Below are positions 1,496 through 49,200 of a stretch of 64,000 nucleotides of DNA, one piece after another; position 1 is the first letter of the stretch, and each line of letters starts with the position of its first letter. A program made the position numbers and the translations under genes. The notes under the pieces are model-generated. The model saw nothing but the letters and a program-made list of their open reading frames with translations, ran no database searches and was not told the origin of the DNA. The DNA lies in assembly GCF_006345805.1 (NCBI RefSeq), contig NC_043023.1, forward strand, positions 12,090,001 through 12,154,000. Reading direction: 5' to 3'. The DNA is from Octopus sinensis (Eukaryota).

Positions 1496-1904
1496 GATTG
1501 AAACGGTTGTCTTGCAGGATGTAGCACTTTTGTTCATCAGTAAAGAACGTGTTTGAAACAGCTGTAGTGAACCACAGCCCATCTTTGTTATTAATCACTC
1601 TTCACCTTACTCAGAACTTTCTTTCGGTTCATTTGCATCTGGAGTCTACAGTCAACAGTGGAATATGTGCAGTGAGTGTAGTCCTTTATGAATGCGATGA
1701 CAGTTACTTGTGGATGTATGCATAATTTGAAGGACAAATCCGTATATAATTTATTAAGTATATATATGTCAGTGTATGCTATGGGTAAATAGGTGGGTTA
1801 TCCACAGCTCTACATTGATGTTTAAATATTTAAACGAGGTAGGAGCATGAAGGTCAAAGGATGATGATGATGATGAAAACACAACAAAGACCAAATCAAT
1901 GTCA

Positions 1905-2144
1905 CTTAAATCTTTTATTCATTATTCTCTCCTAACAAATTCCTCAAAAACTCCAGCACAATCCTCTTCAAAGATCAAAGTTCTCACTGTGTTGATATAT
2001 TTAGATATATCCATGATACTGAAGTTGATATTCATGAAATTGAAGTTGAATACATCAAGCTTGAAGAGGGAGACACCTTGTCTGGTAGAAGACAAAAAAC
2101 TCATAATTGTTGATATGTTGTAATAAATTTTTATATTGATATTT
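1905..2144 (-). other. Conserved ZNF 3' module (3' UTR with AATAAA), gene 1 copy
   Basis: Homologous to the module after every ZNF stop. It lacks exactly one 21-nt subrepeat and is followed by AATAAA and (CAT)n. Confidence 0.8.
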
Positions 2145-9063: not shown

Positions 9064-9470
9064 AATCATCATCATCATCGTTTAACATCCGTTTTCCGTG
9101 CGAGCATGGGTTGGACGGTTCGACCAGGGTCTGGGAAGCCTGGAGGCTGCACCAGGCTCCAGTTTGATCTGGCAGTGTTTCTACGGCTGGATGCCCTTCC
9201 TAACGCCAACCACTCCGTGAGTGTAGTGGGTGCTTTTTACATGCCACCTGCACAGGTGCCAGACGAGGCTGGCAAACGCCCACGATCGGTTGGTGCTTTT
9301 TACGTGCCACCAGTACAGGGGCCAGACGAGGCTGGCAAACACCAACGATTGGTTGGTGCATTTTACGTGCCGCCGGCATGGGGGCCAGACGAGGCTGGCA
9401 AACGGCCACCAACGGATGGTGCTTTTTACGTGCCACCAGTACAGGGGCCAGACGGGGCTGGCAATGGCCA
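9064..9470 (-). mobile_element. RTE-type retroposon 3' end with 4-5 internal ~62-bp tandem repeats
   Basis: Begins (CAT)n CGTTTAACATCCG and carries a repeated GGTGCTTTTTACGTGCCACC unit. Confidence 0.8.
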
Positions 9471-10884: not shown

Positions 10885-12381
10885 ATGAATAATTTGACTA
10901 AACCTAAACCTCTTGATACAAGAGAGAAGCCATATCATTGTGATATCTGTGGTAAGTCATTCGGTGAAGAAAGGGTCTTAACCAAACACAAATGCATTGA
11001 TACAGGAGAGAAATCACATCACTGTGATGTATGTGGAAGATCATTCTCTAAAAGGGTTTCTTTGACTTGTCACGAATGTATTCATACTGGGGAAAAACCA
11101 CATCATTGTGATATCTGTGGTAAATCATTCTCTCAAAGTGCTTCTTTGACTAAACACAAACGTATTCATACTGGGGAAAAACCATATCACTGTGATATCT
11201 GTGGCAAATTATTTTCTTGGTCTTGTTCCTTGAAATCACACAAATATACTCATACAGGAGAGAAGCCATATCACTGTGATATCTGTGGTAAATCATTCTC
11301 TCAAAGGGGTAACTTGACTTATCACAAACGTATTCATACTGGGGAAAAACCATATCAGTGTGATATTTGTGGTAAATTATTTTCTAGGTTTGGTCCCTTG
11401 AAATCACACAAACGTGTTCATACAGGAGAGAAGCCATATCACTGTGATATTTGTGGTAAATCATTCTCTCAAAGGGGTAACTTGACTTATCACACATACA
11501 CACATACAGGAGAGAAGCCATTTCATGGTGATATTTGTGATAAATCTTTCACTAGCAGTAGTCAATTAATTCGTCACAAACGCATTCATATTGGGGAAAA
11601 ACCACATCACTGTGACATCTGTGGTAAGTCATTCTCTCAAAATAGTAATTTAACTAGTCACAAACGTATTCATACTGAGGAAAAACCATATCAGTGTGAT
11701 ATCTGTGGTAAGTCATTTTCTGAGTCTGGTTCCTTGATAAGACACAAACGTGTTCATACAGGAGAGAAACCATATCACTGTGATATTTGTGGTTGGTCAT
11801 TCTCTGATGGGAGTGCATTGACTAGACACACAATCACACATACAGGAGAGAAGCCATTTCGTTGTGATATTTGTGATAAATCGTTTTCCAGAAACAGTGA
11901 ATTGATTTGTCACAAACGCATTCATACTGGGGAAAATCCATACCAATGTGATATCTGCGGTAAATCGTTTACCAGAAATAACACTCTCACTCGTCACAAA
12001 CGTATTCATACTGGGGAAAAACCATATCAGTGTGATATCTGTGGTAAATCATTCTTTCAAGGTGGCGACATATCTAGACATAAACGTACTCATACAGGTG
12101 AAAAGCCATACCATTGTAATATCTGTGGTAGATCATTTTCTGGAAGTAGTGACTTGATTAAACACAAACGTATTCATACAGGAGAGAAACCATATCATTG
12201 TAATGTCTGTGGTAAATTATTCTCTGAAAATTCTAGTTTGACTAGACACAAACGTGTTCATACAGGAGAGAGGCCATATCATTGTAATATCTGTGGTAAA
12301 TCATTCTCCCGAAATGCGGGCTTGTCTAATCACATACGTACCCATACGGGGAAGAAGCCACATAATTGTGATATCTGGTGA
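10885..12381 (+). CDS. C2H2 ZNF gene 2, 17 tandem fingers (2 degenerate), no effector domain
   Basis: Intact ORF with the conserved start MNNLTKPK (an in-frame ATG also lies at 10864) and TGEKPY linkers. Finger 1 ends in HKCID and finger 8 has C->G (HGDIC). Acceptor at 10448. Confidence 0.92.
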
Positions 12382-12512
12382 ATCATTCCCTAGCAATAGT
12401 AACAAACCTATTCATACTGGGGGGAAAAACCATATCATTGTGATATTTGTGGTGAGTCATTCTCTGTAAATGGCCTCTTAAGTACACGTGTGAGTATTCA
12501 TACACAAGTGTA

Positions 12513-12800
12513 ACTGTATATACATCAAAATTTATTACAACAGGACAACGATTATGAATATTTTGTCTGCTAAAAGACAGGGTTTATTCCTCTCCAAGTT
12601 TGACATTATCAACTTCAGTTTCTTGGATGTCAACGTGAAATTCATGAATCACAACTTCAATATCATTTATATATCTAAATATATCAACACAGAAATGACT
12701 TTGGTTTCTGAAGATGATTGTGCTGGATTTTTGAGGAATTTGTTATGAGGGAATAAGAAATAAAAGTTTTAAGTGACATTGATTTTGTCTTTGTTGTGTT
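12513..12800 (+). other. Conserved ZNF 3' module with AATAAA at 12759-12764
   Basis: Follows the vestigial SIHTQV* stop. Copies at about 19652, 27495, 29585, 37516, 39616, 48723 and 49172 (+); 1905, 51605 and 52005 (-); and an internally deleted copy at about 61130-61245 (-). Confidence 0.85.
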
Positions 12801-14808
12801 TTCATCATCATCCTCATCCTTCTTCTTCTTCAGTGTCCATTTTCTTTGCAGGCTTGGGTGGGAAAGTGTGACATGCTGGTAAGCCAGAGTGCTTCTCCAG
12901 TTTCCTCTCAGATTTGGCTGTATGCCCTTAAGATACGAGGCATATTCTATTAATATGCCTGTTCAAGTACCGTAATAGCATGAAACTAGCAGTAGCCCTT
13001 TCAATTGTGTATTTAATTTGATATATGTATGTATGTGTGTGAACATGATGTCAGTCTGATAACTAAAATAAATGTATACAAATCTTGTATTTCAAGCATA
13101 TTTCTGAATGGGGCAGTAGCATGGACTCCCTTTTGCAGACAAAAAAAACTTGAAACTTTTCACTTGTGTGCAACATATGCAGCAAGATAAGATCTTGTCA
13201 ACAAGTTCAACAAGACCTTCCGGTGGTGTAGCTGTGACTTGTAAACCCGTATGGCTTTATTTACGTTTCTGAAGAAAAAAGAAACCCTTCCCCCCACACC
13301 AAATCCTGATCCCACAATATTTTATTCATACGAATGTGACTGATATGAAATGACAAACTAAATGGAGACTGCAGGAAGTTGTTGTTGGTAAACAACAGCA
13401 GAAATTGTATTCACCTCAATAGACGTCCTTGATTGGTTGAAATTGCTGAAATGCAAGAAATTTAACAAATAGCTTACAAACTACAGAATTTTCTCAAGAA
13501 AGCCAAGAGAAAAAGATGTTTTATGTAACACATTCTACCAGTATATGAAGTTTAAAAGTGTTTATTTACAAAGAAATTGTTTTAAATCTGGCGGTCATAG
13601 TGAAAAGATTCCAGGCTTGTTTTTGAGGCTACAGCTCCCTATAAAAACTCAACTTTTGTGGTGAAAATTTGAAAACTCTTCAAGATGAAGATGTTCACAG
13701 AATGGGACAGTAGAGTCATCTGTTGGAGAATAAAAGAAATACAACCAGCTAAAGGGAAATAACTTCTACAACATTCAAACCACGTGGTCCTTGTAAATTA
13801 TTAAAGAAGGTACTTTATTACTGATCACTGACTCGTTGTTTGTATCTGAATACGGTAAATTGACAAAGATTTATTTTAAGATTGTAAAGTTGATACTACT
13901 ACTACTACTACTACTAATAATAATAATGTAATAATAGGATTATGTGAACCTCTTGATCGTAAAGTAATTATTTCGAAGCTGAAACTTAAAATTAGGAAAA
14001 TATATTTGCTCGTCTTAATTAATAACTTCCAAACTGAAATGTTGATCCGTTGTTTATGGAAACCTATGATCGACTGTTACATGTGATATAAAGGAAATTA
14101 ACGGGTAAAATGGAAGTAATATGGCATATTTAATTAGTAAAATTAGAAGAAGAATACCACGTTAATTAATGCTGTCCTGTTGTTTATGAGGCATTGATTA
14201 TAAGATTTACTTTAATGTTATATTAATAATAGTGATGATGATGATGGTTTCAAATTTTGGCCCAAGGCCAGCAATCTTTCGTGCGAGTGAGGGGAGTAGA
14301 ATATATGGGACTTAGTATTTCCCGAAAGGGATGAAGGCGAAGTCGATCTCGGCCGTATTTGAACTCAGGACTTTCTGCCGAAGTCGACATTTCACTTAAA
14401 TTCGTTTCTGAGTCCATAAATAATAATGAAGATAATGATAAGGGCCTGTAATTTGGAGGGGAGACGTAATTCTATTGCTTGGACCCTAGTTCTTTTTATT
14501 GCTTTTATTTCATTGACCTCGAAAGGATGACAGGCAAAGTGAACCTCGGTGGAATTTGAACTTTCAGAGTAAAGACGGACGAGTGTTACATATGATATGA
14601 AGTAAATAGATAAAAGATTTGGTAGATTAACGGTAATTCAGGATTGGTAGATGTTCCTTACATTTAATTACTGCATAATGAGAGAAAAGCTGTCTAATTA
14701 ATTTTGATAGAATAACTAAAAGTCTGTGGCGTATAAGTACATAAACGTGCCCCGCTGACTTTGTTTTCTTCTCACTTTCTGAGAAATCGTTTTTTTTTTT
14801 TGTTTTTT

Positions 14809-15948
14809 CGGTTAATATCTAGATCCGCACCCGGTGGAAAAAATGGAAACGCAAATGTGTAACAGTTGTAAGGCATCGTATATTGACGTAATAAGACGGA
14901 AAAAAAGGGCGCTGACGAACGGGGGTGGGGGGGGGGCGGAATTTGAAATAGAAGCGTGGTAGATTTGTTGAAAATAATCAGCAAATCTACCACGCATGTG
15001 GTAAGTACAGATTATATTTTCCCAATATTATTGATTGTCACAGAATAATTATCAATCGCAACTTCAAAAATTCAAATTCCATTACTTCAGTTTTCACTTT
15101 TTGTTTGTAAAATAAAAAAAAATATTATATAGACTAGCAGTACGCCCGGCGTTGCTCGGGTTTGTAAGGGAAATAACTATAAAGCATTTTTAGCGAAAAT
15201 ATTGAAAAATATTGAAAATAGCAAAAAAATTGAAATTCTCGACCCCATGTCGAATTTATCGATTTTTTTCAGAACTGGGGGAACTTTTCAAAATTTTCGC
15301 TGCGTTAGTTTTGAATTATGACATTGGGCTATGTGTGTGTCAAGTTTCATCAGAATCGGTTGAAAGCCGTGGTCAGGGTGAGGGTACAACCTGACAGACA
15401 CAGAAAAACTGCCGTTTATATATAGAGATTTTTAGAGAGTTACTTCCCTTATGCCAACAATGCGTTTAAATGGTGAAAATTGATGGTAAATTTTTCTTTA
15501 AATCGTAGGCAATTTTCCGAGCCCCCCCCCCCCCCCGTTTGTCAGCGCGCTTATTTTTCGTCATATTCCTTCAATATACGATGCCTTACACCTCTTACAC
15601 ATACTTTTTTCCATTTTTGCCACCTGGGCGTGGATCCTCTACGGTTGATCCTGGGAATTTTCCGACCCCCCACCCCACCCCCGTTCGTCAGCGCCCTTTT
15701 TTTACGTCTTATTCCGTCAATATACGATGCCTTACAACTGTTACACATTTTAGATTCCAGGTTGATCCTGGGAATTTTCCGACCCCCCCCCCCCCCCCCC
15801 CCCACTCCCCCCCTTCCGACCCCCTCCCCCACCCCCGTTCTTCAGCGCCCTTTTTTTCCGTCTTATTACGTCAATATACGATGCCTTACAACTGTTACAC
15901 ATTTGCGTTTCCATTTTTTCCACCGGGTGCGGATCTAGATATTAACCG
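14809..15948. mobile_element. 1.14-kb non-autonomous TIR element (CGGTTAATATCTAGATCCGCACCCGGTGG) inserted in a T-run
   Basis: ~130-bp inverted termini with T-runs on both flanks; the empty site is visible in the paralogous intron at about 8905. G/C-run subterminal repeats. Second copy at 24440-26274. Confidence 0.85.
15133..15430 (+). mobile_element. Helentron/HINE (DINE-1-like) non-autonomous element nested in the TIR element
   Basis: 5' end ACTAGCAGTACGCCCGGCGTTGCTCGGG; 3' end GACAGACACAGA...TTTATATATAGAGAT. The class is inferred from this end architecture. Confidence 0.55.
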
Positions 15949-16169
15949 TTTTTTCTAATGGAATCTCCTATGACTATATTTTAGAGGATGACAGTTATAA
16001 TACTTTTCAGACGGTGTAGTTTGTGATTATATCAGAATTTGTTGTGGAAACCATTGTTCTGAGCCAGTTTAATGAAGGAGAGTTTCACAATATTCAAAAG
16101 CCTCAGTTTTGTTTCCTCAATCACCAACATCGGATTTCAAGCAGTGAGTGAGGGTTGGGCGGAAAAACA

Positions 16170-16745: not shown

Positions 16746-17624
16746 CTTATGAGGTAAAAAGTTTGCTACCCAACCCATTCTTGCAGTTTGGGTAAGTAAG
16801 TGTCTCCCATGAGGCCTTGGGTCAACTAAAACCTTGTGAGTGGTATGTGTTGATGGAAATGGAGGAAGCATATTCATATGTAGATATTATATCATCATCA
16901 TCATTGTTTAATGCCCCTTCCATGCTGGTGTGACTGGATAGTTTGTAGAAAGGCCATGGCCAGATGGAAGCCTGCACCAGACTGCAGTGAGTGTTTTACC
17001 AGGATTTTTACTGCCTCAATGGATTCTGACCCATGGTAAACGTAGATATTAAATGGATGACAGTGTTGATGTTGTAAGATTTGCAATGTTGAATTACTAT
17101 GTCGTTTAATGATTCTCTTTATCTCACTGCTTCTTTTTTTCTGTTTCAGAATATAACAAGTTGACGTGAAAGAAATTTCTTCATTTAGACATGCCTCTGA
17201 TATTTTGATTGACTTTCATCAATTAAAGGAAGACCATATATTCATAAGGCACATTCATCAACGCATCAACTTCTTTGTATAAATCTTCAACCAGTGATGG
17301 GAAAATACTTCTTCTGGACATTGTATTTAACAGCAACGTTCTTTTGTCTTCACTGTCTGGAATGTGGAGATTAATAATTTCCAGGTTAATTAATCTTGGA
17401 TACCTTTACAAAAGAGTTAACAGTTTACATCTTGTGTTTTAGATATTAAGTAAGATCACTGATTGGAGAAACATAACATTAAATTATTCTCTGACACATC
17501 TGAACACAAACACTCTTAGAAATGCAAAAAGAACTACCATTGTGTTATGTATGAAAAATTATTATCTCACGATGAATGATTTAACTAAACCAAAAAGGCC
17601 ACATCATTTTCTGGAAACAGTCTC

Positions 17625-19130
17625 TTGATTAGGCACAAACATATTCATACTGGTGAAAAACTATGTCATTGTAATATCTGTGGTAAATCATTCTCTGAAA
17701 GTAGTGACTTGCCTAAACACAAATGTACACATACAGGAGAGAAGCCATATCATTGTGATATTTGTGATAAATCATTCGCTGCAAACAGTGACTTGACTAG
17801 ACACAAGCACGTTCATGCTGGTGAAAAACCATATCATTGTGATATCTGTGGTAAATCATTCTCTCAAAGTGATGACTTGACTAAGCACAAACCTACACAT
17901 AAAAGAGAGAAAGCATGTCTTTGTAATATCTGTGGTAAATCATTCACTTGTAACAGTGAATTATGTAGCCATAAACGTATTCATACTGGGGAAAAGCCAT
18001 ATCACTGTAATATCTGTGGTAAATCATTCTCTCAGAGTGGTTCTTTGACTTATCACAAACGTATTCATACTGGGGAAAAACCATATCACTGTAATGTCTG
18101 TGGTAAATCATTTGCTAACAATAGTCTCTTGATTATTCACAAACGTATTCATACCAGGGAAAAACCATATCAGTGTGATATCTGTGGTAAATTATTTTCT
18201 CAGTCTGGTAACTTGAAACCACACAAACGTGTTCATACAGGAGAGAAACCATATCACTGTGATATTTGTGGTAGGCCATTCTCTCACAGTAATGCCTTGA
18301 TTAAACACACATTCACACATACAGGAGAGAAGCCTTTTCATTGTAATATCTGTGATAAATCGTTCACTAGAAATAGTCAATTGACTTGTCACAAACGCAT
18401 TCATACTGGGGAAAATCCATACCAGTGTGATACCTGTGGTAAATCATTTTCCAGTTATAACGCTGTCACTCGTCACAAACATATTCATACTGGGGAAAAA
18501 CCATATCATTGTGATATCTGTGGTAAATCATTTTCTCAAAGTGGTGCTTTGACTTATCACAAACGCATTCATACTGGGGAAAATCCATACCAATGTGATA
18601 TCTGCGGTAAATCGTTTACCAGAAATAACACTCTCACTCGTCACAAACGTATTCATAATGGGGAAAAACCATATCATTGTGATATCTGTGGTAAATCATT
18701 CTCTCAAAGTGGCGACATAATTAAACATAAACGTACTCATACAGGAGAGAAGCCATATCAATGTAATATCTGTGGTAGATCATTTTCTGGAAGTAGCGAC
18801 TTGATTAAACACAAACGTATTCATACAGGAGAGAAGCCGTATCATTGTAATATCTGTGGTAAATCATTTGCTGACAGTAGCAATTTAAATTATCACAAAC
18901 GTGTTCATACTGGAGAGAGGCCATATCATTGCAATATCTGTGATAAAGCATTCTCATCAAGTAGTTATTTGACTGATCACAAATGTATTCATACTGGGGA
19001 AAAGTTATATCAGTGTGATATTTGTGGTAAATCATTCGCTAGAAATAGTCAATTGACTTGTCACAAACGCATTCATACTGGGAAAATCCATACCAGTGTG
19101 ATATCTGCGTTAAATCATTTTCCAGAATAA
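17625..19130 (+). CDS. C2H2 ZNF gene 3: 17-finger ORF lacking any in-frame ATG; probably continues to about 19445 through frameshifted or erroneous sequence
   Basis: The 501-codon ORF contains no Met. The cognate leader ATG (17572, [10 protein letters not shown]) is out of frame and stops after 18 codons. Acceptor at 17149. Frameshift in a G-run at about 19082. Confidence 0.6.
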
Positions 19131-19648
<518 letters not shown>

Positions 19649-21584
19649 TAACTGTATCAATATCAAAATTTATTGAAACATGACAACAATTATGAATATT
19701 TTGTCTGCTAAAAGACAGGTTTATTCCTCTTCAAGCTTGACATTATCGACTTCATTTTCTTGGATGTCAACATGAAATTCATGAATCACAACTTCAATAT
19801 CACTTATATATCTAAATATATCAACACAGAGATGACTTTGGTTTTCTGGAGAGGATTGTGCTGGATTTTTGAGGATTTTTATTATGAGAGAATAAAGGAA
19901 TGGGAATAAGGAATAAAAGTTTTGAGTGACATTGATTTTGTCTTTGTTGTGTTTTCGTCATCATCATATCATCATCATCATCAAATCATCATCCTTTAAC
20001 GTTTTCTATCCAGGATCAGGTGGGAAAGTGTTACAGAGCTGTCAAGCCAGAGTACTGCTCCAGATTTGGCTGTATGCCCTTAAGATACATGGTGTGTTTT
20101 ATAAATGTCCCTCTGCAAGTATCATGCTAACATGAAACCAGTAGTAGCTCTTTTGGTGGTTTTGGATTTAATTTCATGTGTGTGTGTGTGAACATGATGT
20201 CAGTCTAATTACAAAAATAGGTGTACACAAATCTTGTTTACAAATCTTCTAGAGGGAAAGAAAAAAAAAAAATTGAAACTTTTCACATTGCCGTTTTACA
20301 CCCATATGCTAAAAAAATTGCAAGATAAGATATCCGATGTGAAAATCTTAGAAAAGTGTAATATGTCCAGCATCCAAAGCATCATCATCATCATCATCGT
20401 TTTAGTGTCCACTTTCCATGCTAGCATGGGTTGTACGGTTCAATTTGGTCTGGGAAGCCTGAAGGCTGCACCAGGCCCAGTCTGATCTGGCAATGTTTCT
20501 ACAGCTGGATACTTTTCCTAACGCCAACCACTCCGTGTGTGTAGTGGGTGCTTTTTACGTGCCACCGGCACGAGACCGAGTAGGGCCGGCGCTGGCAACA
20601 GCCACGTTCGGATGGTTCTCTTACGTGCCACCGGCACTGGTATCACAGCTGCAATTTCCATTGATGTTGGTCGATTTCGATTCTCATATTGCCTCAACAG
20701 GTCTTCACAAGTAGAGTTTTGCGTCCCAAGAAGGAAAGGTATGCATAAGTGGGCTGGCTACATCCCATGTAGAGGCCACGAGTTATGGTGTCACTTGTAT
20801 ACTGATGAGAATTCAGTGCAGATGGTTAGGACATGTTTTCGAAATGGAAATGACTGCAGTACAAAATTCTTCAGTGGCTTAGGTCTATAAGGATAAGCTG
20901 AAGCAATAATAAGGCTCTAGAGCATAAATGCTTTAGCTTTTTGATTGACATGTTGGGAAAGTCATTGCCTAGATCCATTTGCATGGCATAAAAATCTTGG
21001 TCCTAATCACCTGATTTAAAGTGTATTTACACCACTTCTGCATTTTCAACCGATCACTGACGTCCATTGAGGTAAAAAAACATTCTGTGCCGTATGAATA
21101 TGTCCTCGTTTAAGAAACAGATTGGGTTTATTTACACTTGCGAAGAAAAAAGATACCCTTCCCCACCACTAACCCTAACTAAGGATCTTTTGGTTTGTTT
21201 GAAAGGCAGTTTTTTAAAATAATTTCCACGTAACTAAACACTTTTAAACTTCGTATACTGGTAGAATCTGTTTATAAACATCTTTTTCTCTTGGATTTAT
21301 TGAGAAAATGCTATAGTTTTGTAACATATTTCAAGCTTTTGGCAATTTTAACCAATTGCTGACCTCCATTGACGTAAACAACATTCTGTGCCGTATGAAT
21401 ATGTCCCTCGTTTAAGAAACAGATTGGGTTTATTTACATTTGCGAAGAAAAAAAGATACCCTTCCCCCACCCCTAACCCTAAAACAGATTGAAATGCAAT
21501 AGATCGATACTAGGGTTATAATTATGGGTGACAATTTCATGGAAGCTATACTAGGTGCACAACACAGTGGAAATGGAGTGACAG

Positions 21585-25410: not shown

Positions 25411-27204
25411 TTTTTGTTTGTAAAATAAAAAAAATATATATATAGACTAGCAGTATCGCCCGGCGTTGCTCGGGTTTGTAAGGGAAATACTATAAAGCAT
25501 TTTTAGCGAAAATATTGAAAAATATTGAAAATAGCAAAAAAATTGAATTCTCGACCCCATGTCGAATTTATCGATTTTTTTCAGAACTGGGGGGAACTTT
25601 TCAAAATTTTCGCTGCGTTAGTTTTGAATTATGACATTGGGCTATGTGTGTGTCAAGTTTCATCATCAGAATCGGTTGAAAGCCGTGGTCAGGGTGAGGG
25701 TACAACCTGACAGACACAGAAAAACTGCCGTTTATATATAGAGATTTTAGAGAGTTACTTCCCTTATGCCAACAATGCGTTTAAATGGTGAAAATTGATG
25801 GTAAATTTTTCTTTAAATCGTAGGCAATTTTCCGAGCCCCCTCCATCCCCCCCCCCCCCCCGTTTGTCAGCCTGCTTATTTTTCGTCATATTCCTTCAAT
25901 ATACATGCCTTACAAACCTCTTACACATACTTTTTTCCATTTTTGCCACCTGGGCGTGGAATCTCTCTACGGTTGATCCTGGGAATTTTCCGACCCCCCA
26001 CCCCACCCCCGTTTCGTCAGCGCCTTTTTTTACGTCTTATTCCGTCAATATACGATGCCTTACAACTGTTAACCACATTTTAGATTCCAGGTTGATCCTG
26101 GGATTTTCCGACCCCCACCCCACTCCCCCCCCCCCCTTTCGACCCCCCTCCCCCACCCCGTGTCTCTTCAGCGCCCTTTTTTCCGTCTTATTACGTCAAT
26201 ATACGATGCCTTACAACTGTTACACATTTGCGTTTCCATTTTTTCCACCACCTGGTGGATCTAGATATTAACCGTTTTTTTCTAATGGAATCTCCTATGA
26301 CTATATTTTAGAGGATGACAGTTATAATACCTTTTCAACGGTGTAGTTTGTGATTATATCAGAATTGTTGTGGAAACCATTGTTCTGAGCCAGTTTAATG
26401 AAGGAGAGTTTTCACACATATTCAAAGCCTCAGTTTTGTTTCCTCAATCACCAACATCGGATTTCAAGCAGTGAGTGAGGGTTGGGCGGAAAAACACACA
26501 CATTGATATATATGTGTATATGTAGACAGGATCGGCTTTTTTTCAAATTCCCTTTACCAAATCCACTCACAAGACTTTGGTCAGCCCAAGCGTGTAGCAG
26601 AAACGTGTGCTCAATTGTCACGTACTGGGACTGTACCTAGAACTATGTTTGAGAAACGAGCTTCATACAACAAAACCTGCTAATGGTTTTAAACTACACT
26701 CAATGTCATTGTTACACTGTCTCTTGTTAATTATTGAGCATCCTAAATTTTTGAGGTTATTGTGCTTGCTGTGTAAAATTATAGATGTGTGCATGTGTAT
26801 CTCTCTTTCTCTCTCTCCCTTTCTGAATATGTATTATGTATATGTATACATGCTCCAGCATGGTCGCAGTCAAATGACAGAAACAAGTAAAAGAACATAT
26901 CGTCATCATCTTCCTTGTTGTCATTGTTTAATGTCTGCAGAGAAGCAGAAATGTGCAGGGCTGGGTCAGGCTGCAATGTCATCTTTACAATGGTTTCTAC
27001 TGCTAGATGCCCTTCCTAATGCCAACCACAGAATGTACTGGGTGCTTTTTATGTGCCGCCAGCATCAGTCAAGATGCTGGGAGCAGGTGTGCTTATGAGG
27101 TAAAAAGTTTGCTACCCAACCCATTCTTGCAGTTTGGGTAAGTAAGTGTCTCCCATGATGGCCTTGGGTCAACTAAAACCTTGTGAGTGGATGTGGTGAT
27201 GGAA

Positions 27205-27493
<289 letters not shown>

Positions 27494-28434
27494 CCGGTAT
27501 CAGTATTAAAATTTATTTACACCATGACAACAATTATGAATATTTTGTCTGCTAAAGTCAGGGTCCTTCCTCTCAAGCTTGACATTATCAACTTCAGTTT
27601 CTTGGATGTCAACATGAAATTCATGAATCACAACTTCAATATCATTTATATATCTAAATATATCAACACAGAGATGACTTTGGTTCTGAAGAGGATTGTG
27701 CTGGATTTTGAGGAATTTGTTATGAGGGAATAAGAAATAAAGTTTTAAAGTGACATTGATTTGTTCTTTTTTGTGTGTTTCATCATCATTCTTCATCATA
27801 CTTTACCATCAATTTTTTTGCAGGCTTGGGTGGGAACGTGTGACAGGTGATGAGAGTTGTTAAATCCATATATACTTCCTTGGTTATTCTTCTGCCAATA
27901 ATCCATGTATTCATAAGTAAAATCCATTGTATATCTGTATTCCAAATATAATCTATATTGAGTTAGAAATGTGAAATTTGGTGCCTTATAATTTAATATT
28001 GGTGTAAGGCTTAGCACTGAAATAGTCAAAAACTATGGAAAGGTTGCAAGACGCAACAAAATTTTAGAAAAGAAAAAAAAGTAAATAAGTGGAAATTTTA
28101 CTGGTGAGTGTGTTACATTATCAGGCACCAAAAGAGAATGACTCCCCTGACAACAGAATATGGTTCAACACACAAACTCGCATAAAGAATTTGGCAAACC
28201 AAAACCCAATATATATATATTATATATTTTTATACATATACTGGAGTAAACACATAAATGTGAAACAAGGTGGAAAAGGAGTACTCAAATATGAGAGGTA
28301 GAGTAATATGCTTTATTTAAAAGCAGCAGAATTTAACAAAAGCTGTTACTCAGAGTAATATATATATATATTGGTAACAACGGTAAGATAAAAAAGAAAG
28401 AAAGAGACCTCAATATTATGTAAATAGAGGAATT

Positions 28435-28679
28435 TATCTGTAAAATAATATGTGACAATTATTCAATAGCCAAGATAAAACTCTGAGTTTCAGATGCCGA
28501 AGTGGAAATCCACACCACCATCTCTTCGGTTATCTGGCCATCTGAAAAACGCTAAACATAGCGTTTCTCAAACGGCCACATAACCGAAGAGATGGTGTTG
28601 TGGATTTCCACTTCGGCATCTGAAACTCAGAGTTTTATCTTTGCTACCGAATAATTGTCACATATTACATTTACAGATA
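28435..28679. repeat. 245-bp hairpin (about 119-bp arms, 6-nt loop); also 38467-38711 and 50142-50386
   Basis: TATCTGTAAA...AAACGCT-AAACAT-AGCGTTT...TTTACAGATA. The arms are about 92% complementary by hand alignment. Confidence 0.95.
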
Positions 28680-28962
28680 TATATATATATGTATATTACC
28701 TCAACATCCAAGCATCCTCATTCTACATTGAGAGATGGACGCTTCATTTTTGTGCTGGTGCCACATTATGTCGTACGCGAATGAGAGGATTTGCATCCCC
28801 AACGTAGAATTTTGATGTAATACATGTCCTTGAGGTAGTAATTGTGCGCGGCTGAAGAAGGCCATAGACACACATTATGCATTGTTATAAATCCGTCTAA
28901 TAAAGGCCCGAAACATATGTACCACCGCTGAATCCTTCGCATCATGTTTTTATTTTGATTAA

Positions 28963-29584
<622 letters not shown>

Positions 29585-29890
29585 CTGTATCAATATCAAA
29601 ATTTATTGAAACATGACAACAATTATGAATATTTTGTCTGCTAAAAGACAGGGTTTATTCCTCTTCAAGCTTGACATTATCGACTTCAGTTTCTTGGATG
29701 TCAACATGAAATTCATGAATCACAACTTCAATATCACTTATATATCTAAATATATCAACACAGAGATGACTTTGGTTTCTGGAGAGGATTGTGCTGGATT
29801 TTTGAGGAATTTTATTATGAGAGAATAAAGGAATGGGAATAAGGAATAAAAGTTTTGAGTGACATTGATTTTGTCTTTGTTGTGTTTTCG

Positions 29891-29927
<37 letters not shown>

Positions 29928-32059
29928 TTAACGTTTTCTATCCAGGATCAGGTGGGAAAGTGTTACAAGAGCTGTCAAGCCAGAGTACTGCTCCAGATTT
30001 GGCTGTATGCCCTTAAGATACATGGTGTGTTTTATAAATGTCCCTCTGCAAGTATCATGCTAACATGAAACCAGTAGTAGCTCTTTTGGTTTTGGATTTA
30101 ATTTCATGTGTGTGTGTGTGAACATGATGTCAGTCTAATTACAAAAATAGGTGTACACAAATCTTGTTTACAAATCTTCTAGAGGGAAAGAAAAAAAAAA
30201 AATTGAAACTTTTCACAATTGCCGTTTACACTCCATATGCTAAAAAAATTGCAAGATAAGATATCCGATGTGAAAATCTTAGAAAAGTGTAATATGTCCA
30301 GCATCCAAAGCATCATCATCATCATCGTTTAGTGTCCACTTTCCATGCTAGCATGGGTTGTACGGTTCAATTTGGGTCTGGGAAGCCTGAAGGCTGCACC
30401 AGGCCCAGTCTGATCTGGCAATGTTTCTACAGCTGGATACTTTTCCTAACGCCAACCACTCCGTGTGTGTAGTGGGTGCTTTTTACGTGCCACCGGCACG
30501 AGACCAGTAGGGCCGGCGCTGGCAACAGCCACGTTCGGATGGTTCTCTTACGTGCCACCGGCACTGGTATCACAGCTGCAATTTCCATTGATGTTGGTCG
30601 ATTTCGATTCTCATATTGCCTCAACAGGTCTTCACAAGTAGAGTTTTGCGTCCCAAGAAGGAAAGGTATGCATAAGTGGGCTGGCTACATCCCATGTAGA
30701 GGCCACGAGTTATGGTGTCACTTGTATACTGATGAGAATTCAGTGCAGATGGTTAGGACATGTTTTCGAAATGGAAAATGACTGCATTACAAAAATTCTT
30801 CAGTGTGTCCAACAAATAGAGGGATATCATGACAGCCTGGCCTTAGGTATAAGGATAAGCTGAAGCAATAAATAAGCTCTCTAGAGCTTGATTTGACATG
30901 TTGGGAAAGTCATTGCCTAGATCCATTTGCATGGCATAAAAATCTTGGTCCTAATCACCTGATTTAAGTGTATTTACACCACTTCTGCATTTTCAACCGA
31001 TCACTGACGTCCATTGAGGTAAAAAAACATTCTGTGCCGTATGAATATGTCCTCGTTTAAGAAACAGATTGGGTTTATTTACACTTGCGAAGAAAAAAAG
31101 ATACCCTTCCCCCACCACTAACCCTAACTAAGGATCTTTTCGGTTTGAAAGGCAGTTTTTTAAAATAATTTCCACGTAACTAAACACTTTTAAACTTCGT
31201 ATACTGGTAGAATCTGTTTATAAAACATCTTTTTCTCTTGGATTTATTGAGAAAATGCTATAGTTTGTAACATATTTCAAGCATTTTGGCAATTTTAACC
31301 AATTGCTGACCTCCATTGACGTAAACAACATTCTGTGCCGTATGAATATGTCCCTCGTTTAAGAAACAGATTGGGTTTATTTACATTTGCGAAGAAAAAA
31401 AAGATACCCTTCCCCCACCCCTAACCCTAAAACAGATTGAAATGCAATAGATCGATACTAGGGTTATAATTATGGGTGACAATTTCATGGAAGCTATACT
31501 AGGTGCACAACACAGTGGGAAATGGAGTGACAGCGATCAACTCCGACGTCTGGCAGCTGACTTTGGCAGACACCCATAAAATTATTAACATCTTACAAAC
31601 AATAACTCTGAGCACCTTTTCAAACTCCATCTGTCTAACACCCATGGACATGTTTACAAAGTCAGAAAACAGCACAGCTCCCATGACTTTAGGAAACATT
31701 TTTTCACGCTAAGAGTTGCTGAAGCATGGAACAAACTTCAAGCATCAGTTGTTAGTTGTCGGAGCACTGCATCCTTCAAAACTTCCATGCTTCCTGAGAT
31801 TGCCAACACTACACCTGATCTTTCTCCCCTCCATACACACGCAAGCATGTATCTGACTCATACACTGTTCGCTTTCCAGACATTTGTACATTACTGTATA
31901 TGCTTTATATGCACTCTTGACAAGTTGTGGTGCGACTGAACACTGGATACAACAATTTCATTATTATTATTACAAACCGAAAAGATCCGTTGAATTCGTT
32001 CGGGTCTTTTTCTTCGTCGCATTCAGTCAACAACTTCACTTCCAAATTTCCACCAGATT

Positions 32060-32200
32060 ATTATAACAAAGTCTACTCACATATTCTATCCTACGACCGT
32101 TTCCAGCTCATGACTTCACCGCAAATACCTTAAGAAATAATCCGTCTTGTGGGCGTGGCATCGGGACGTGACGTCATGCCGTCGCTCTTCCGGTTCCCTC
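32060..32200 (-). promoter_or_regulatory. Duplicated ETS/CRE/GC-box promoter and exon-1 donor, with no same-strand ZNF downstream (also about 22120-22250 and 42090-42230)
   Basis: TGACGTCA at 32169-32176, GGGCGTGGC at 32151, CTTCCGG, and ACTCAC (donor GTGAGT on the minus strand) are all retained. Confidence 0.55.
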
Positions 32201-34633
32201 CCCCACAGCATTTCCTCTCTTTTCCAATTATTGTCCCTCCTCTCCACTTGATCCCAATCTAATTAATACTGCTTCTCTAATCCGCTCATAATCGCCCATT
32301 CTGTTGGGTGTGATGTTCATTCACATTGCTAGCTGGTCTACTATACTGGATGGATCTTTTCTGTTTGAAAATAATTTCCACGCAGGAGTGGCTGTGTGGT
32401 AAGTAGCTTGCTAACCAACCACATGGTTCCGGGTTCAGTCCCACTGCGTGGCACCTTGCGCAAGTGTCTTCTACTATAGCCTGGTGAATGGATTTGGCAG
32501 ACGGAAACTGAAAGAAGCCCATTGTATGTATATATATATATATATATAGTGAATCCAAAGAAGAAAAAAAAGCACGTCAACGTGAGGACGTGGAACAAAT
32601 ATAGTATTGTTGGACGCTCAGGAAGGAAGGAAGAAGGAGGGTTTAACATTTCGAGCAGAGCTCTTTGTCGGAAACATAGAAGGAAAGATCCAGAGAAGGG
32701 AAGACAGAAGAAAAAAAATCGCCAACGGTACACACGCGGTCACATTTTGAAAGCATGTATGTATGTATGTATGTAGGAGTAGGTGTGTGGTAAGTAGCTT
32801 GCTAACCAACCACACGGTTCCGGGTTCAGTCCCACTGCGTGGCACCTCGGGAAAGTGCCTGCTACTATAGCCTCGGGCCGATCAAAGCCTTGTGGGTGGA
32901 TTTGGTAGACGGAAACTGAAAGAAGCCCTTCGTATATATATTTATATATGTGTGTGTGTGTGTTTGTCCCCATAGCATTGCTTGACAACCGATGCTGGTG
33001 TATTTATGTCCCCGTTACTTAGCGGTTCGGCAAAATGGACCGATAGAATAAGTACTGGGCTTACAAAAAATAAGCCCTGGTGTCGATTTGCTTCACTAAA
33101 AGGCGGTGCTCCAGCATGGCCGCAGTCAAATGACTGAAACAAGTAAAAGAAATAAAGAAAGAGAGAGTAACTAAACACTTAATTAAAAAAAACTGCCGTT
33201 CAAACCGAAAAGATCCGTACCTAGTAGAGTTTTATAGCAGAATATATGAGTACATTTTATTAAAATAATCTAATGAAATTTGAAGAAATTGGGATTAAGA
33301 AAAAAACTGGAACGAAACCAAGCAGTCAGTAGAGCCATCTATTGGAGAATTGAAGGAATACAACTTTACAAAGGGAAATAACTTCGACTCCACTTTGCCG
33401 CCACCAATTATATTATTAATTAAGGTGCTTAATTACTGATCGTTGACTCGCTGTTTATGTCTGAATACGGTAAGTTGACAAAAATATACTTTAAGGCTGT
33501 AACGGTGATAATAATGCTAATAATGATAATGTAAAGAATAGAATTATGTAACTCTCTCGATATTACAGTAATTATTTTTCGAAGCGGGAACCTGACAACA
33601 ATTAGGAAAATATAATTTGCTCGTCTTAATTAATAACTTCCAAACTGAAATGTTGATCTGTTGTTTAGGAAAACCTATGATCGACTTTTATATGTGATAT
33701 AAAGTAAATTAATTGGTAAAATGAAAGTAATGTGTCATTATTGATTAGTAAAAGGTGAGGAGAACGGTTTAAGACTACAACATTAATTAATTCTGTTGTG
33801 TCTGGGGAGAGTCATTCTCTTTTAGTGCCTTATTATTTAACACACTCACCGATAGAATTTCTACTTATTTCTTATTTGTGTTTCCCTAAAATTTTCGTTT
33901 CGTCTTGCAACTTTTTCAATAGTTTTGACTCTGTCCGTGATTTACACTGTGTTCCCTTTTGTTTCTTTGTGCGGTCGATAAATTAAGTACCAGTTACGAA
34001 CTGGGTCGATGTAATCAACTTAATCCGTTTGTCTGTCCTTGTTTGCCCCCTCTGTGTTTAAGCCTCTTGTGGGTAATAAAGAAACAGGTATTTCGTCTGC
34101 CGCTACGCTCTGAGTTCAACTTCCGCCAAGGTCGACTTTGCCTTTCATCCTTTCGGGGTCGATAAATTAAGGACCAGTTACGCACTGGGGTCGATGTAAT
34201 CGACTTAATCCGTTTGTCTGTCCTTGTTTGTCCCCTTGTGGGCAATAAAGAAATAAGAATATATGGACCCCAGTATTTCCAGAAAGGAATGAAAGGCAAG
34301 ATCGACCCCTGCCGTATTTGAACTCAGAACCTTAAATTTGACTTAAATTCTTTTCAGAGTGTATAAATAATAACGACGACGATGATGATGATGATAAGCA
34401 TTTTTACTTAATGCATATGGCCTGTAATTTGGTTGGGAGGTGTAATTCTATTATATGGACCCCTGCTTCTTATTTTATTGAACTCGGAAGTCTGAAAGGC
34501 AAAATGAACCTCGGTGGAATTTGAACTTTTAGAGTAAAATCCGATGAGAGTTACATGTGATAGAAAGTAAATAGATAAAAGATTTCGTAGATTAACAGTA
34601 ATTCAGAATCGTTACATGTTCTTTACACTTAAT

Positions 34634-35235
34634 GGATCTTTTCCTTTTGAACGGCAGTTTTCAACACAATTTCTAGTTAACTAAACACTTTTAAACTTTG
34701 TATACTGGTAGAATGTGTCAAAATAAAACATTTTTTTCTCTTGGCTTTCTTGAGAAAATTGTAATTTGTTTGTCTAACGTAGTTTGATTCTTTGAATTTT
34801 AACCAATCATTTGCTGCGTCTAAAACTGAGACAACATCCTGTAACTAACCCTAACTTTTTTTTCTTAATTGTTTATAGAATTATTTTGATTGTTAATTGT
34901 TTAAATCACTTTCCATTGCTTTAGTTTTTTTACATGCGTAACAATTAAATCAATTTAACAATTAAGAAAAAAAAAATTTAGGGTTAGGGGGGAGGTTTAG
35001 GGTTAGTTACAGGATGTTGTTTCAGTTTTAGATGCAGCAAATGATTTTAGCTCAAAAGAGAGCATAGGATTGGTTAAAATTCGAAAAATTAAACTACGTT
35101 AAACAAACAAATTACAAGTTTCTCAAGAAAGCCAAGAGAAAAAAAATGTTTTCTTTTGACACATTCTACCAGTATACGAAGTTTTAAAATGTTTAGTTGA
35201 CTGGAAATTGTCTGCCATTCAAAAGGAAAAGATCC
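34634..35235. mobile_element. ~600-bp foldback element with ~230-260-bp inverted arms (also 44663-45266)
   Basis: GGATCTTTTCCTTTTGAA...CCCTAAC at the left is mirrored by GTTAGGG...TTCAAAAGGAAAAGATCC at the right. It lies in the predicted intron of the downstream ZNF. Confidence 0.85.
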
Positions 35236-36390
35236 CATTTAATTACTGCACAATAAGAGGAAACTCGCCTAATTAATTCTGATGGAATAATTACAAATCC
35301 GTCTGGGGTAAGTACTTAAATGTACCCCACCGACTTCGTTTCCTCGTCACTTTCTGAAAAATTGGTATTTTTAAATGAAATCTCTAAAAGCAGTACTCCA
35401 GCATGGCCACAGTCCCTGAGTGAAACAGTAGCTGGCATTCTGTGTTTTAGTTCATCCAATTAACTGAAAAGCCTGCTCATGGAATTAACATGCAAATGGC
35501 TGAGTATTCCACAGACATGGGGACCCTTGATATAGTCTTCAGTGAGGCACAGCATGACACGGATGGTGAGAAGACTGGCCCTTTGAATTACAGGTGAAAC
35601 TCATTTTTGACACCTGAGTGGACTGATGCAAAGTGAAATAAAATGGCTTGGAGACTCATTGCACCACTGTGTATCGAACTCACAACTTTACAATTGTGAG
35701 TGAAATACCCTAACCACTAAGCCATGCCACTTCACAGGTGAAACAAGTGAAAGGAGAGAAGAGAAAGAAAACAGATAAATAATTAGAGAAATGTGGAAGC
35801 GATTCATCTATATACAGAATGTTGTAAAAGTTTCAATGCCTCAATGGATTCTGACCCATGCAAACGTAGATATTAAATGGATGACAATTGATGTCGTAAA
35901 ATTGAATTACTCTGTTGTTTAACTATCCATTTTATCTTACTGCCTCTTTTCCTATTTCAGAATAACACATCGTGTCGACATAAAAGAAATTTCTTCATTC
36001 TGATGTGCCTCTGTTTTTATTGACTTCCCTTGACTGAAGGACGTCCACGTATTAACAAGAAACATTCATCAATACATCAGACTCTTAATATAAATTTGAT
36101 CTTCGACAAATGATGGGAAAAAATTTCTGGACATTGTATTTGACAACAACATTGTTTTTCTTCACTGTCTGGAATGTAGAGGAGATTATCAATTAACAGT
36201 TTGATTAACGTTGGATAACTTTACAAAAGATTTGACAGTTTACATTTTAGACATGAAGTAAAATCACAAACGAAACAAACATAAGATTAAATTATTCTCT
36301 GGAAATACAGACACAACTAAACACTAACATCCACAGAATTTGGAAAAACACACTATTATTGTGATATTCATGACAGATTATTCTCTCCTA

Positions 36391-37383
36391 ATGAATAATT
36401 TGACTGAACCAAAAACCCCTGATACAAGAGAGAAGCCATATCATTGTGATATCTGTGGTAAATCATTCTCTCAAAGGGGTTCTTTCACCTGTCACACACG
36501 TATTCATACTGGGGAAAAGCCATATCACTGTGATATCTGTGGTAAATCATTCTCTCAGAGTGGTTCTTTGACTTATCACAAACGTATTCATACTGGGGAG
36601 AAACCACATCACTGTGACATCTGTGGTAAATCATTCTCTCAAAATAGTACTTTAACTACTCACAAATGTATTCACACTGGGGAAAAACCATATCAGTGTG
36701 ATATCTGTGGTAAGTCATTTTCTGAGTCTGGTCTTTTGAAATTACACAAACGTATTCATACAGGAGAGAAGCCATATCACTGTAATATTTGTGGTAGGTC
36801 ATTCTCTCAAAGGAGTGCCTTGACAAATCACACATACACACATACAGTAGATAAGCCATTTCATTGTAATATCTGTGATAAATTTTTCACTACCAATAGT
36901 CACTTAATTCGTCACAAACGCATTCATACTGGGGAAAAACCACATCACTGTCATATCTGTGGTAAATCATTTTCCACAAAAGAAACTTTAGCTCGTCACA
37001 AACGTATTCATACTGGGGAAAAGCCATATCAATGTGATATTTGTGGTAACTCATTTTCTCAAAGTGGTGACTTGCTTAAACACAAACGTACTCATACAGG
37101 AGAGAAGCCATATTATTGTAATATCTGTGGAAGATCATTTTCTGGAAGTAGTGACGTGATTAAACACAAACGTACTCATACAGGCGAGAAGCCATATCAT
37201 TGTAGTATCTGTGGTAAATCATTTTTTGAAAGTAGTAGTTTAAGTAGTCACAAACGTATTCATACAGGAGAGAAGCCATATCGTTGTAATATCTGTGGTA
37301 AATCATTCTCCCGAAATGAGGGCTTGTCTAATCACATACGTACCCATACGGGGAAGAAGCCACATGATTGTGATATCTGGTGA
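36391..37383 (+). CDS. C2H2 ZNF gene 4a, 11 fingers
   Basis: Intact ORF with MNNLTEPK start (in-frame ATG also at 36370). Acceptor at 35960. Confidence 0.9.
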
Positions 37384-39026: not shown

Positions 39027-39612
<586 letters not shown>

Positions 39613-39921
39613 TAACTGTATCAATATCAAAATTTATTGAAACATGACAACAATTATGAATATTTTGTCTGCTAAAAGACAGGGTTTATTCCTCTTCAAG
39701 CTTGACATTATCGACTTCAGTTTCTTGGATGTCAACATGAAATTCATGAATCACAACTTCAATATCACTTATATATCTAAATATATCAACACAGAGATGA
39801 CTTTGGTTTCTGGAGAGGATTGTGCTGGATTTTTGAGGAATTTTATTATGAGAGAATAAAGGAATGGGAATAAGGAATAAAAGTTTTGAGTGACATTGAT
39901 TTTGTCTTTGTTGTGTTTTCG

Positions 39922-39958
<37 letters not shown>

Positions 39959-45900: not shown

Positions 45901-46421
45901 ATATTAAATGGATGACAATTGATGTCGTAAAATTGAATTACTCTGTTGTTTAACTATCCATTTTATCTTACTGCCTCTTTTCCTATTTCAGAATAACACA
46001 TCGTGTCGACATAAAAGAAATTTCTTCATTCTGATGTGCCTCTGTTTTTATTGACTTCCCTTGACTGAAGGACGTCCACGTATTAACAAGAAACATTCAT
46101 CAATACATCAGACTCTTAATATAAATTTGATCTTCGACAAATGATGGGAAAAAATTTCTGGACATTGTATTTGACAACAACATTGTTTTTCTTCACTGTC
46201 TGGAATGTAGAGGAGATTATCAATTAACAGTTTGATTAACGTTGGATAACTTTACAAAAGATTTGACAGTTTACATTTTAGACATGAAGTAAAATCACAA
46301 ACGAAACAAACATAAGATTAAATTATTCTCTGGAAATACAGACACAACTAAACACTAACATCCACAGAATTTGGAAAAACACACTATTATTGTGATATTC
46401 ATGACAGATTATTCTCTCCTA

Positions 46422-48590: not shown

Positions 48591-48990
48591 ATCATTCTCT
48601 AGCAATAGTAACAAACCTATTCATACTGGGGGAAAAAACCATATCAGTGTGATATCTGTGGTAAACCATTCTCGGCAAATGGCCTCTTAAGTACACGTGT
48701 GAGTATTCATACACAAGTGTAACCGTATCAGTATTAAAATTTATTACAACAGGACAACAATTATGAATATTTTGTCTGCCATAAGACAGGGCTTATTCCT
48801 TGATGTTATCGACTTCAATTCCATCACTGTCAATATGAAATTCATGAATATGAACCTCAGTATCATGTATGTGTCTAAATATATTAAAACAGTGATGATT
48901 TGTGAAGAACATGGTGCTGGATTTTTGAGGAATTTCTTACGAGAGAATGCAGGAAAGGGAATAAGGAATACAAGCTTTAAGAGACATTAA

Positions 48991-49200
<210 letters not shown>

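Follow-up and report, generated by a model that had tools for sequence, protein, structure and literature searches.

A probable family-specific 3' untranslated and polyadenylation unit behind clustered zinc-finger genes of Octopus sinensis

A zinc-finger (ZNF) gene cluster of Octopus sinensis, contained in a window of 64 kb (the whole stretch of DNA analysed; assembly GCF_006345805.1, contig NC_043023.1, positions 12,090,001 to 12,154,000), carries behind its ZNF arrays a repeated module of ~300 nt whose two strands are both open in a single register. A repeated element of this kind mimics hidden coding capacity, and the locus raises the question of what the module is: a peptide-coding sequence in one direction or the other, or part of the ZNF transcripts themselves. 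We consider it probable, at about 0.72, that the module is a family-specific 3' untranslated region (UTR) plus cleavage/polyadenylation unit of young, tandemly duplicated 'bare' poly-zinc-finger genes. Here the double openness was traced to a decayed triplet repeat in a paralogous 3' UTR, and neither the peptide readings nor a structured RNA are supported. The first-pass annotation had named a post-transcriptional RNA element as one candidate beside a bicistronic micropeptide, an antisense exon and the relic of an inverted gene. It was right that the module is conserved and tied to the 3' ends of the ZNF genes, and of its candidates a role at the RNA level, as a 3' UTR, was retained.

Module copies behind the zinc-finger arrays

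The window has a G+C content of ~37%, and its C2H2 ZNF arrays are clustered on both strands. A regular-expression (regex) scan of the window located the following arrays and relics.

3384-2219, minus strand: ZNF array
11023-12283, plus strand: ZNF array
17670-19577, plus strand: ZNF array
36445-37285, plus strand: ZNF array
46476-48492, plus strand: ZNF array
53266-52487, minus strand: ZNF array
62825-61565, minus strand: ZNF array
27263, 29280-29510 and 39311-39541: ZNF relics

The module was searched for by blastn of 12513-12830 against the window, and all copies compared are those within its 64 kb. Twelve copies in both orientations were obtained, of which ten are full, one is split by an insertion and one is internally deleted, with E-values of 1e-52 to 1e-136 and identities of 74-95% to the focal copy. 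They are listed here with their open reading frames (ORFs) and are referred to below by their position in kb.

12514-12802 (12513-12830 in blastn), plus strand: focal copy, putative family-specific 3' UTR plus cleavage/polyadenylation unit
1857-2134, minus strand: 79% identical to the focal copy, with an exact 21-nt deletion and a 60-codon ORF, its C-terminus frame-shifted
19651-19965, plus strand: sense ORF frame-shifted, 27 codons
27505-27803, plus strand: behind a ZNF relic, several 1-2-nt deletions, ORF open via a shifted frame
29584-29904, plus strand: behind a 3-finger relic, 67-codon ORF
37526-37826, plus strand: behind the intact 11-finger gene, 95% identical to the focal copy
39615-39935, plus strand: 99.85% identical to the 29.6-kb unit, 10-kb tandem duplication
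48733-49023, plus strand: divergent (76%), behind the 24-finger gene, hexamers mutated to AATAAG/AATACA
49182-49496, plus strand: second module in tandem, only ~150 nt of ZNF tail ahead, mosaic
51587-51897, minus strand: solo, most divergent (74%), GTG in place of ATG, 8-nt insertion
52010-52402, minus strand: split by an insertion resembling a short interspersed element (SINE), parts 52402-52263 and 52053-52010
61140-61260, minus strand: remnant behind an intact 492-aa ZNF ORF, weak blastn match at 61179-61152

Behind every C2H2 array found by the regex scan there is a module copy, and each copy follows directly on a ZNF tail or a further module and points the same way as the array. The alignment of the copies opens at a common ZNF tail (...ATACACAAGTGTAA) and closes with AATAAA-type hexamers, a GU-rich tract and (CAT)n. 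These results bear out what the first-pass annotation had stated about the number of copies (about 12, in both orientations), their attachment to ZNF 3' ends and their AATAAA plus (CAT)n endings. A short block (TTTTGCAGGCTTGGGTGGGAAAGTGTGACA...) stands just past (CAT)n in several units, the distant 61-kb one included (12836-12916, 27810-27845, 37832-37869 and 49502-49539, and 61113-61037 on the minus strand).

Polyadenylation signals and anatomy of the gene

Metazoan poly(A) sites comprise an AAUAAA hexamer, cleavage at a CA 10-30 nt downstream of it and a GU/U-rich downstream element. In the focal unit, the part between the present and the ancestral stop and the non-periodic blocks of the module are arranged as follows.

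12382-12513, plus strand: decayed, frame-shifted terminal fingers between present and ancestral stop, now 3' UTR
12527-12536, plus strand: AAAATTTATT, invariant in 11/11 aligned copies, significance borderline
12720-12737, plus strand: GTGCTGGATTTTTGAGGA, the module's best conserved block, a near-invariant 18-mer 15-30 nt upstream of the hexamers
12752-12757 and 12759-12764, plus strand: poly(A) hexamers AATAAG and AATAAA
12777-12778, plus strand: CA, candidate cleavage site 13 nt past the hexamer
12780-12802, plus strand: GU/U-rich downstream element TGATTTTGTCTTTGTTGTGTTTT
12803-12832, plus strand: (CAT)n-type microsatellite at the end of the module, sharing its motif class with the periodic core

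The module lies downstream of a protein-coding stop, on the same strand, and its hexamer, CA and GU/U-rich element have canonical spacing; the end of the module reads as the textbook layout of a metazoan cleavage/polyadenylation site. This layout of hexamer, CA and GU/U-rich element is kept in nine of the ten full copies, the exception being the 48.8-kb copy (AATAAG/AATACA). The poly(A)-proximal blocks are also the slowest-evolving, parsimony changes per site rising from 0.51 in the poly(A)-proximal tail to 0.69 in the ORF and 0.80 in the leader, and the best conserved elements are GTGCTGGATTTTTGAGGA and AAAATTTATT, not the repeat core. Because of its location 15-30 nt upstream of the poly(A) hexamers, GTGCTGGATTTTTGAGGA is a candidate upstream (U-rich) processing element, while AAAATTTATT is an AUUUA-containing element on the sense RNA or an AATAAA on the antisense strand.

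Two copies depart from this pattern. In the 48.8-kb module, which has AATAAG and AATACA and no AATAAA, the next intact hexamers are found ~450 nt downstream in the tandem module, which suggests that transcripts of this gene may read through to the site of the second module. In the 61-kb remnant, an internal deletion of ~190 nt took the periodic core, the ORF and the AATAAA hexamers; the poly(A) site of the 492-aa ZNF ORF (61401-62879, minus strand) must lie elsewhere, or this gene is decaying.

Homology between old paralogues starts ~60-100 nt upstream of a pyrimidine tract followed by AG (TTTCAG, then directly AATATCAC...) and fades at (CAT)n or shortly past it. After this acceptor-like site come ~450 nt with no continuous frame and an ATG (MNNLTEPK...), followed by the finger array, whose terminal fingers are frame-shifted, and by the module. 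We infer from this extent that the unit kept among paralogues is one large terminal exon with the whole coding sequence, so each gene would consist of a splice-acceptor-like site, a 5' UTR of ~450 nt, the ATG, the fingers, the decayed fingers, the module and its poly(A) site.

The terminal fingers are themselves a case of coding sequence turning into 3' UTR. In every array they are frame-shifted and decayed, and the present stop stands 130-500 nt ahead of an ancestral stop after ...IHTQV. In the focal gene the present ORF stops at 12381 (...CDIW and stop), the ancestral stop being at 12511-12513 (GTGTAA, 12508-12513), and one identical 1-nt deletion that gives the ...CDIW ending is common to three ZNF genes. 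Decayed terminal fingers are seen at these positions.

12340-12513, 37340-37520, 48550-48722 and 19130-19650: decayed terminal fingers
2371-2140 and 61401-61250, minus strand: decayed terminal fingers

Open frames in both directions and the periodicity behind them

Eight of 11 copies have a sense ORF of 60-75 codons that opens with an ATG, and the divergent 1.9-kb and 48.8-kb ones are among them. This ORF is disrupted at 19.7 kb, 51.8 kb and 52.3 kb, and the 61-kb copy has lost it by deletion. An in-register antisense frame (...DIEVVIHEFHVDIQETEVDNVKLEEE and stop) is present in most copies. Both frames had been described in the first-pass annotation and were found again here, and in the focal copy they lie with the periodic core as follows.

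12554-12748, plus strand: sense downstream ORF, 64 codons, MNILSAKRQG...RNLL and stop, no codon-level constraint detected
12584-12742, minus strand: in-register antisense ORF, QIPQKSST...VKLGEE and stop, with no constraint and no homologue in the tests and searches given below
12590-12697, plus strand: triplet-periodic core of 108 nt, a degenerate (ATC)n/(CAT)n in which higher-order repeats of 21 nt are weak

Compared with dinucleotide shuffles, the longest open frame has a P of ~0.03-0.05, and the two longest jointly a P of ~0.001-0.014. The core is strongly periodic in triplets, with a z of 9.2 as compared with 1.2-1.7 for true ZNF coding sequence in the window and -1.8 to +0.7 for UTR, flank and intergenic controls. 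In the sense frame, A occupies 56% of position 1, T 50% of position 2 and C 44% of position 3, and the core is 50% identical to an in-frame (ATC)n, a value reached by 0/5000 shuffles, with ATC the best of the 64 triplet motifs. Third positions are pyrimidines in 26/36 cases, and since sense stops end in a purine and in-register antisense stops need an A at this position, both frames avoid stops. In fact, the probability that both frames are open is 0.11 when the core is shuffled within codon positions and 0.0009 under a plain shuffle, a ~120-fold difference. The same triplet periodicity is the cause of the I/N/F-rich sense peptide (ATC, AAC, TTC) and of the D/V/E-rich antisense 'heptad' (GAT, GTT, GAA), and it explains the indels of 21, 9 and 6 nt by slippage. 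The core combines significant periodicity, one dominant motif and unit-length indels, as a decayed triplet repeat does, and we propose that the middle 108 nt derive from an (ATC)n=(CAT)n tract that has decayed and has weak higher-order units of 21 nt. Its pyrimidines at third positions would leave few stops in the sense and in-register antisense frames without any coding function.

The first-pass annotation had described the module as built from 21-nt repeats, and this was only partly recovered. Autocorrelation is highest at lag 21 (0.46; P<0.0002 for this lag alone) and the 1.9-kb copy has lost exactly 21 nt, but P is 0.086 over any lag of 4-63 and Tandem Repeats Finder reported no 21-nt array in the module; autocorrelation is raised at all lags that are multiples of 3.

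Codon-level tests gave no sign of purifying selection in either the sense or the antisense frame. Parsimony changes fall on the three sense codon positions in the ratio 49:40:43 (chi-square p=0.62) and, the antisense frame being in register, these even counts speak against antisense coding too. Private changes are likewise even over codon positions in each divergent lineage. Nei-Gojobori ratios of nonsynonymous to synonymous change (dN/dS) are mostly 0.55-0.9 on both strands and reach 1.2-1.8 in several pairs. That indels are mostly multiples of 3 had been claimed from the 1.9-kb and 48.8-kb copies; this stands for those two, but over all copies only 3 of ~12 indel events in the ORF are of this kind (21, 9 and 6 nt), and at least nine others are of 1, 2 or 8 nt. 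In a neutral simulation on the consensus with the observed 22-25 substitutions, modelled on the two divergent 'intact' copies, the sense frame stays open in 52-56% of cases.

Among young duplicates the module diverges as its flanks do. The module and the flank differ by 3.5% and 2.4% between the 27.5-kb and 37.5-kb units, by 3.4% and 2.6% between 37.5 kb and 49.2 kb, by 6.3% and 6.1% between 27.5 kb and 49.2 kb, and by 0.7% and 1.7% between 19.7 kb and 29.6 kb, and the difference is non-significant in each pair. Within the window, indel lengths, dN/dS and divergence relative to the flanks all came out as the first-pass annotation itself had said would tell against coding, so that neither the bicistronic micropeptide nor the antisense exon was upheld.

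An antisense coding exon, or the relic of an inverted gene, would make of the acidic D/E/V-rich frame a C-terminal exon with its own stop. Consistent with this, the perfectly conserved antisense AATAAA (reversed AAAATTTATT) follows ~45-50 nt downstream of the antisense stop, and many antisense codons are G-first (GAT, GAA, GTT). Antisense dN/dS is also low (0.16-0.5) in pairs with the 51.8-kb copy, a synonymous excess that had been noted earlier. This excess holds pair by pair but is not robust: it is found only in pairs with that copy, the other pairs giving 0.5-1.7, and the private changes of the 51.8-kb copy are even over codon positions (12:9:8, p=0.64). The G-first pattern is, moreover, the complement of the C-third (ATC)n periodicity, and no conserved upstream antisense exon can be recognized, as the downstream flanks of the old paralogues are not conserved. 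A HMMER search with a profile of eight antisense peptides against 1.84 billion representatives yielded one match, a tilapia coiled-coil protein (E=1.7e-5), which we regard as repeat-driven chance, the protein's own tandem repeat DLEAEIHKFHVEKDK resembling DIEVVIHEFHVD. Pfam has no match for either the sense or the antisense peptide and PDB nothing credible for either, the best sense match having E=0.22. We consider an antisense exon or the relic of an inverted gene very unlikely; for the relic, no supporting homologue was found in Pfam, PDB or HMMER, and the SUMO-like motif read at the end of this frame (VKLE) is only four residues long and carries no weight.

Several observations weigh against the 3' UTR reading, and two of the remaining alternatives draw on them. 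The ATG of the sense ORF is retained in 10/11 copies, and the full 64-codon ORF exceeds the length expected under the periodic model (P ~0.04). Moreover, only ~7 of the copies are semi-independent, which leaves the codon tests with modest power, and weak selection may be present. Old paralogues keep 72-84% identity in the module and 74-82% in the 5' UTR part and do not align beyond the exon; this retention of the module could reflect a constraint on the UTR beyond its poly(A) function, or gene conversion instead. Finally, cleavage at the CA, the exon boundary, the use of the acceptor and of the ATG, and the absence of translation are all predicted from sequence.

The retained ATG and the excess length would both be expected of a translated downstream ORF (dORF), together with the presence of an ATG-started ORF of at least 60 codons even in the divergent 1.9-kb and 48.8-kb copies. 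Such a dORF could yield a micropeptide, or it could act in cis, raising translation of the ZNF ORF whatever its peptide sequence, and the effect of vertebrate dORFs on the main ORF is said not to depend on the peptide. Translation of dORFs is reported to enhance that of the main ORF (PMC7459409). Against this possibility in our cluster stand the lack of codon-position bias, dN/dS values near 1, a neutral expectation of ORF retention of about one half, the frameshifted C-termini of two 'open' copies (1.9-kb and 27.5-kb) and the loss of the ORF core, through the deletion of ~190 nt, behind the intact 492-aa ZNF gene. Among proteins of similar length, a word-indexed search of 5.8 billion sequences found no word-sharing candidate for the sense peptide, for which a full HMMER search was not run. 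Translation of the dORF seems to us quite unlikely.

The persistence of the module in old paralogues whose flanks past the exon no longer align is also what a cluster-wide regulation beyond polyadenylation would predict, in which a microRNA or an RNA-binding protein recognizes the conserved blocks and the WTCAAC-type units repeated every 21 nt. A variant at the DNA level would have these blocks and units serve poly-zinc-finger proteins as a target with triplet periodicity. The invariant 10-mer, the near-invariant 18-mer and a lag-21 periodicity that is real for that lag agree with either form; nevertheless, the periodic core is not the conserved part and is deleted behind one intact gene, and the divergence of the module matches that of its flanks in young duplicates. 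Rfam has no match for the module, single-sequence folds are not stabler than shuffles (z=+0.31 sense, +0.89 antisense), and the alignment fold has a covariation term of +2.29, with compensatory changes in 2/65 pairs, at the low power of seven sequences. MicroRNA seeds picked out by eye in some copies (miR-10-like ACAGGGT, miR-200-like CAGTATT) are not conserved among copies. Taken jointly, the RNA and DNA variants appear unlikely. Weak or sequence-independent selection that co-regulates the cluster, through a cis-acting translated dORF or through the 21-nt-phased core and the invariant blocks as an RNA or DNA binding platform (for instance for the poly-zinc-finger proteins of the cluster itself, each finger of which reads 3 bp), is given as slim a chance as translation of the dORF. 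DNA pattern scans for further copies in metagenome, prokaryotic-genome and viral contigs returned only chance matches of 21-22 nt with unrelated flanks.

Duplication, exchange at the gene 3' ends and known counterparts

The family-specific 3' UTR that we favour would have been copied along with its exon through segmental duplication at the DNA level. Positions 27200-49500 form a tandem segmental duplication with a period of ~10.02-10.03 kb (27505 to 37526, 29584 to 39615), in which identity between the 29.6-kb and 39.6-kb units is 99.85% across 2 kb, while an enlarged ZNF array and an additional module have changed the third repeat. The ORF of this enlarged array (46371-48590; 739 aa, 24 fingers) is an internal duplication of a ~12-finger block, one peptide run occurring twice, and its positional counterpart at 36340-37383 has 11 fingers.

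Duplication of DNA also bears on whether the module is the tail at the 3' end of a retroelement that spreads ZNF exons via RNA, a simple repeat as in stringent-type long interspersed elements (LINEs) or SINEs. Retroposition was raised since many paralogue alignments end at (CAT)n, with a constant 3' end and varying 5' extents (-519, -285, -110, +6). Truncated copies, however, have downstream flanks co-duplicated up to 1.4 kb, which makes them DNA-level duplicates, and the 12.5-kb, 19.7-kb, 29.6-kb and 61-kb units have 75-250 nt in common past (CAT)n. The homology also takes in the ~60-100 nt that precede the acceptor-like site, the junctions that were read showed neither poly(A) tails nor target-site duplications, and no module copy occurs apart from a ZNF tail or another module. 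A mobile unit is accordingly the least probable of the origins considered here.

Identity along the paralogous units is mosaic. Between the units at 37.5 kb and 49.2 kb, divergence falls from 24% in the ZNF tail to 3.4% in the module and 0.4% downstream (module vs downstream p=1e-4), and the two gene types share an island, about -100 to +300, in which identity is 86-98%, with flanks at 64-80%. This mosaicism points to ectopic recombination or gene conversion, which, acting after duplication, may have kept the copies alike. What this would add to the biology of ZNF clusters is a zone of ectopic exchange at the gene's 3' end, made up of the last fingers and the UTR, in which terminal fingers decay into UTR.

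Some further features of the cluster accompany these units. The 17.6-19.6-kb gene has a disrupted start (17490-17650), where ATGAATGATTTAACTAAACC... meets a stop after ~17 codons; its last fingers are frame-shifted and so is the ORF in its module, and it is likely a pseudogene. A search with the ZNF proteins gave generic ZNF matches only, with identity of at most 62%, a search with the ZNF N-terminal region gave no candidate protein, and the exact products of three ZNF ORFs had no entry when looked up. The ZNF exon showed neither a KRAB domain nor another effector domain. Two ZNF arrays are crossed by antisense ORFs of 111 and 132 codons; these encode repeat peptides, the periodic sequence giving rise to long antisense frames, and their register differs from that of the ZNF frame. 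A SINE-like dispersed repeat (...CTGGATACACTTCCTAACGCCAACCACTCCGAGAGTGTAG...GGTGCTTTTACATGCCACC...), perhaps akin to cephalopod SINEs, has many copies in the window, one of them within the module behind the 52.5-53.3-kb ZNF array. Proline-rich ORFs with internal repeats (...PPPPPPPTPP...) occur in an inverted-repeat block duplicated 10 kb apart, which is probably a repeat element and not a gene. Microsatellites of the (TATATACA)n type give YIYIYMYIY... frames, and one of them adjoins the 5' truncation point of the 3-finger relics.

2607-2942 and 62384-62782, plus strand: antisense ORFs across ZNF arrays
1-353, 9065-9319, 20384-20640, 30312-30567, 40343-40598, 54321-54555 and 58683-58995: SINE-like repeat
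52262-52079, minus strand: SINE-like repeat
14809-14941 and 15814-15948 (inverted), 15480-15958 and 25795-26271: proline-rich ORF block
29056-29130, 39057-39130 and 32500-32600: (TATATACA)n-type microsatellites

Elements open on both strands in one register could be sorted elsewhere in the same manner, by counting changes per codon position on a tree, by scoring indel lengths over all copies and not over favourable ones only, by simulating neutral ORF survival and by shuffling within codon positions to gauge the share of periodicity.

Among known systems, translated dORFs (PMC7459409) resemble the module in having an ATG-started small ORF a few tens of nt past the main stop, and differ in that the ORF of the module has no codon constraint, is deleted behind one intact gene and is translated only hypothetically. 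With the canonical metazoan 3' UTR the module shares the order and spacing of its elements, its position directly after the stop and a signal region that is the most conserved part; unlike it, the module has 2-3 tandem hexamers and a (CAT)n microsatellite directly after them, and the use of its site is predicted from sequence. The concept of cryptically simple sequence, or decayed microsatellites, reportedly goes back to Tautz, Trick and Dover in 1986, and the core fits it in its triplet periodicity, in belonging to the same ATC class as the adjacent (CAT)n and in its 21-, 9- and 6-nt indels, although it is only 50% identical to a pure repeat, has a weak 21-nt period and lies within a UTR copied with its gene. 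Long antisense ORFs are said to have been described as a by-product of periodic (RNY-like) sequence by Merino et al. in 1994 and Silke in 1997. Likewise, in the module third-position pyrimidines exclude stops in the frame and in its in-register reverse complement, and antisense ORFs of 111-132 codons also occur over the ZNF arrays of the window; in contrast, the periodic sequence of the module is itself non-coding, and the ZNF-array antisense ORFs are in another register. The clustered KRAB-ZNF genes of vertebrates have homogenised 3' ends, undergo ectopic recombination and are marked at these ends by ZNF274/KAP1. The octopus cluster is similar to these in being a tandem ZNF cluster with mosaic identity and with 3' ends more alike than their flanks; it differs in that no KRAB or effector domain was found in its exon and in that the similarity reaches into the non-coding UTR.

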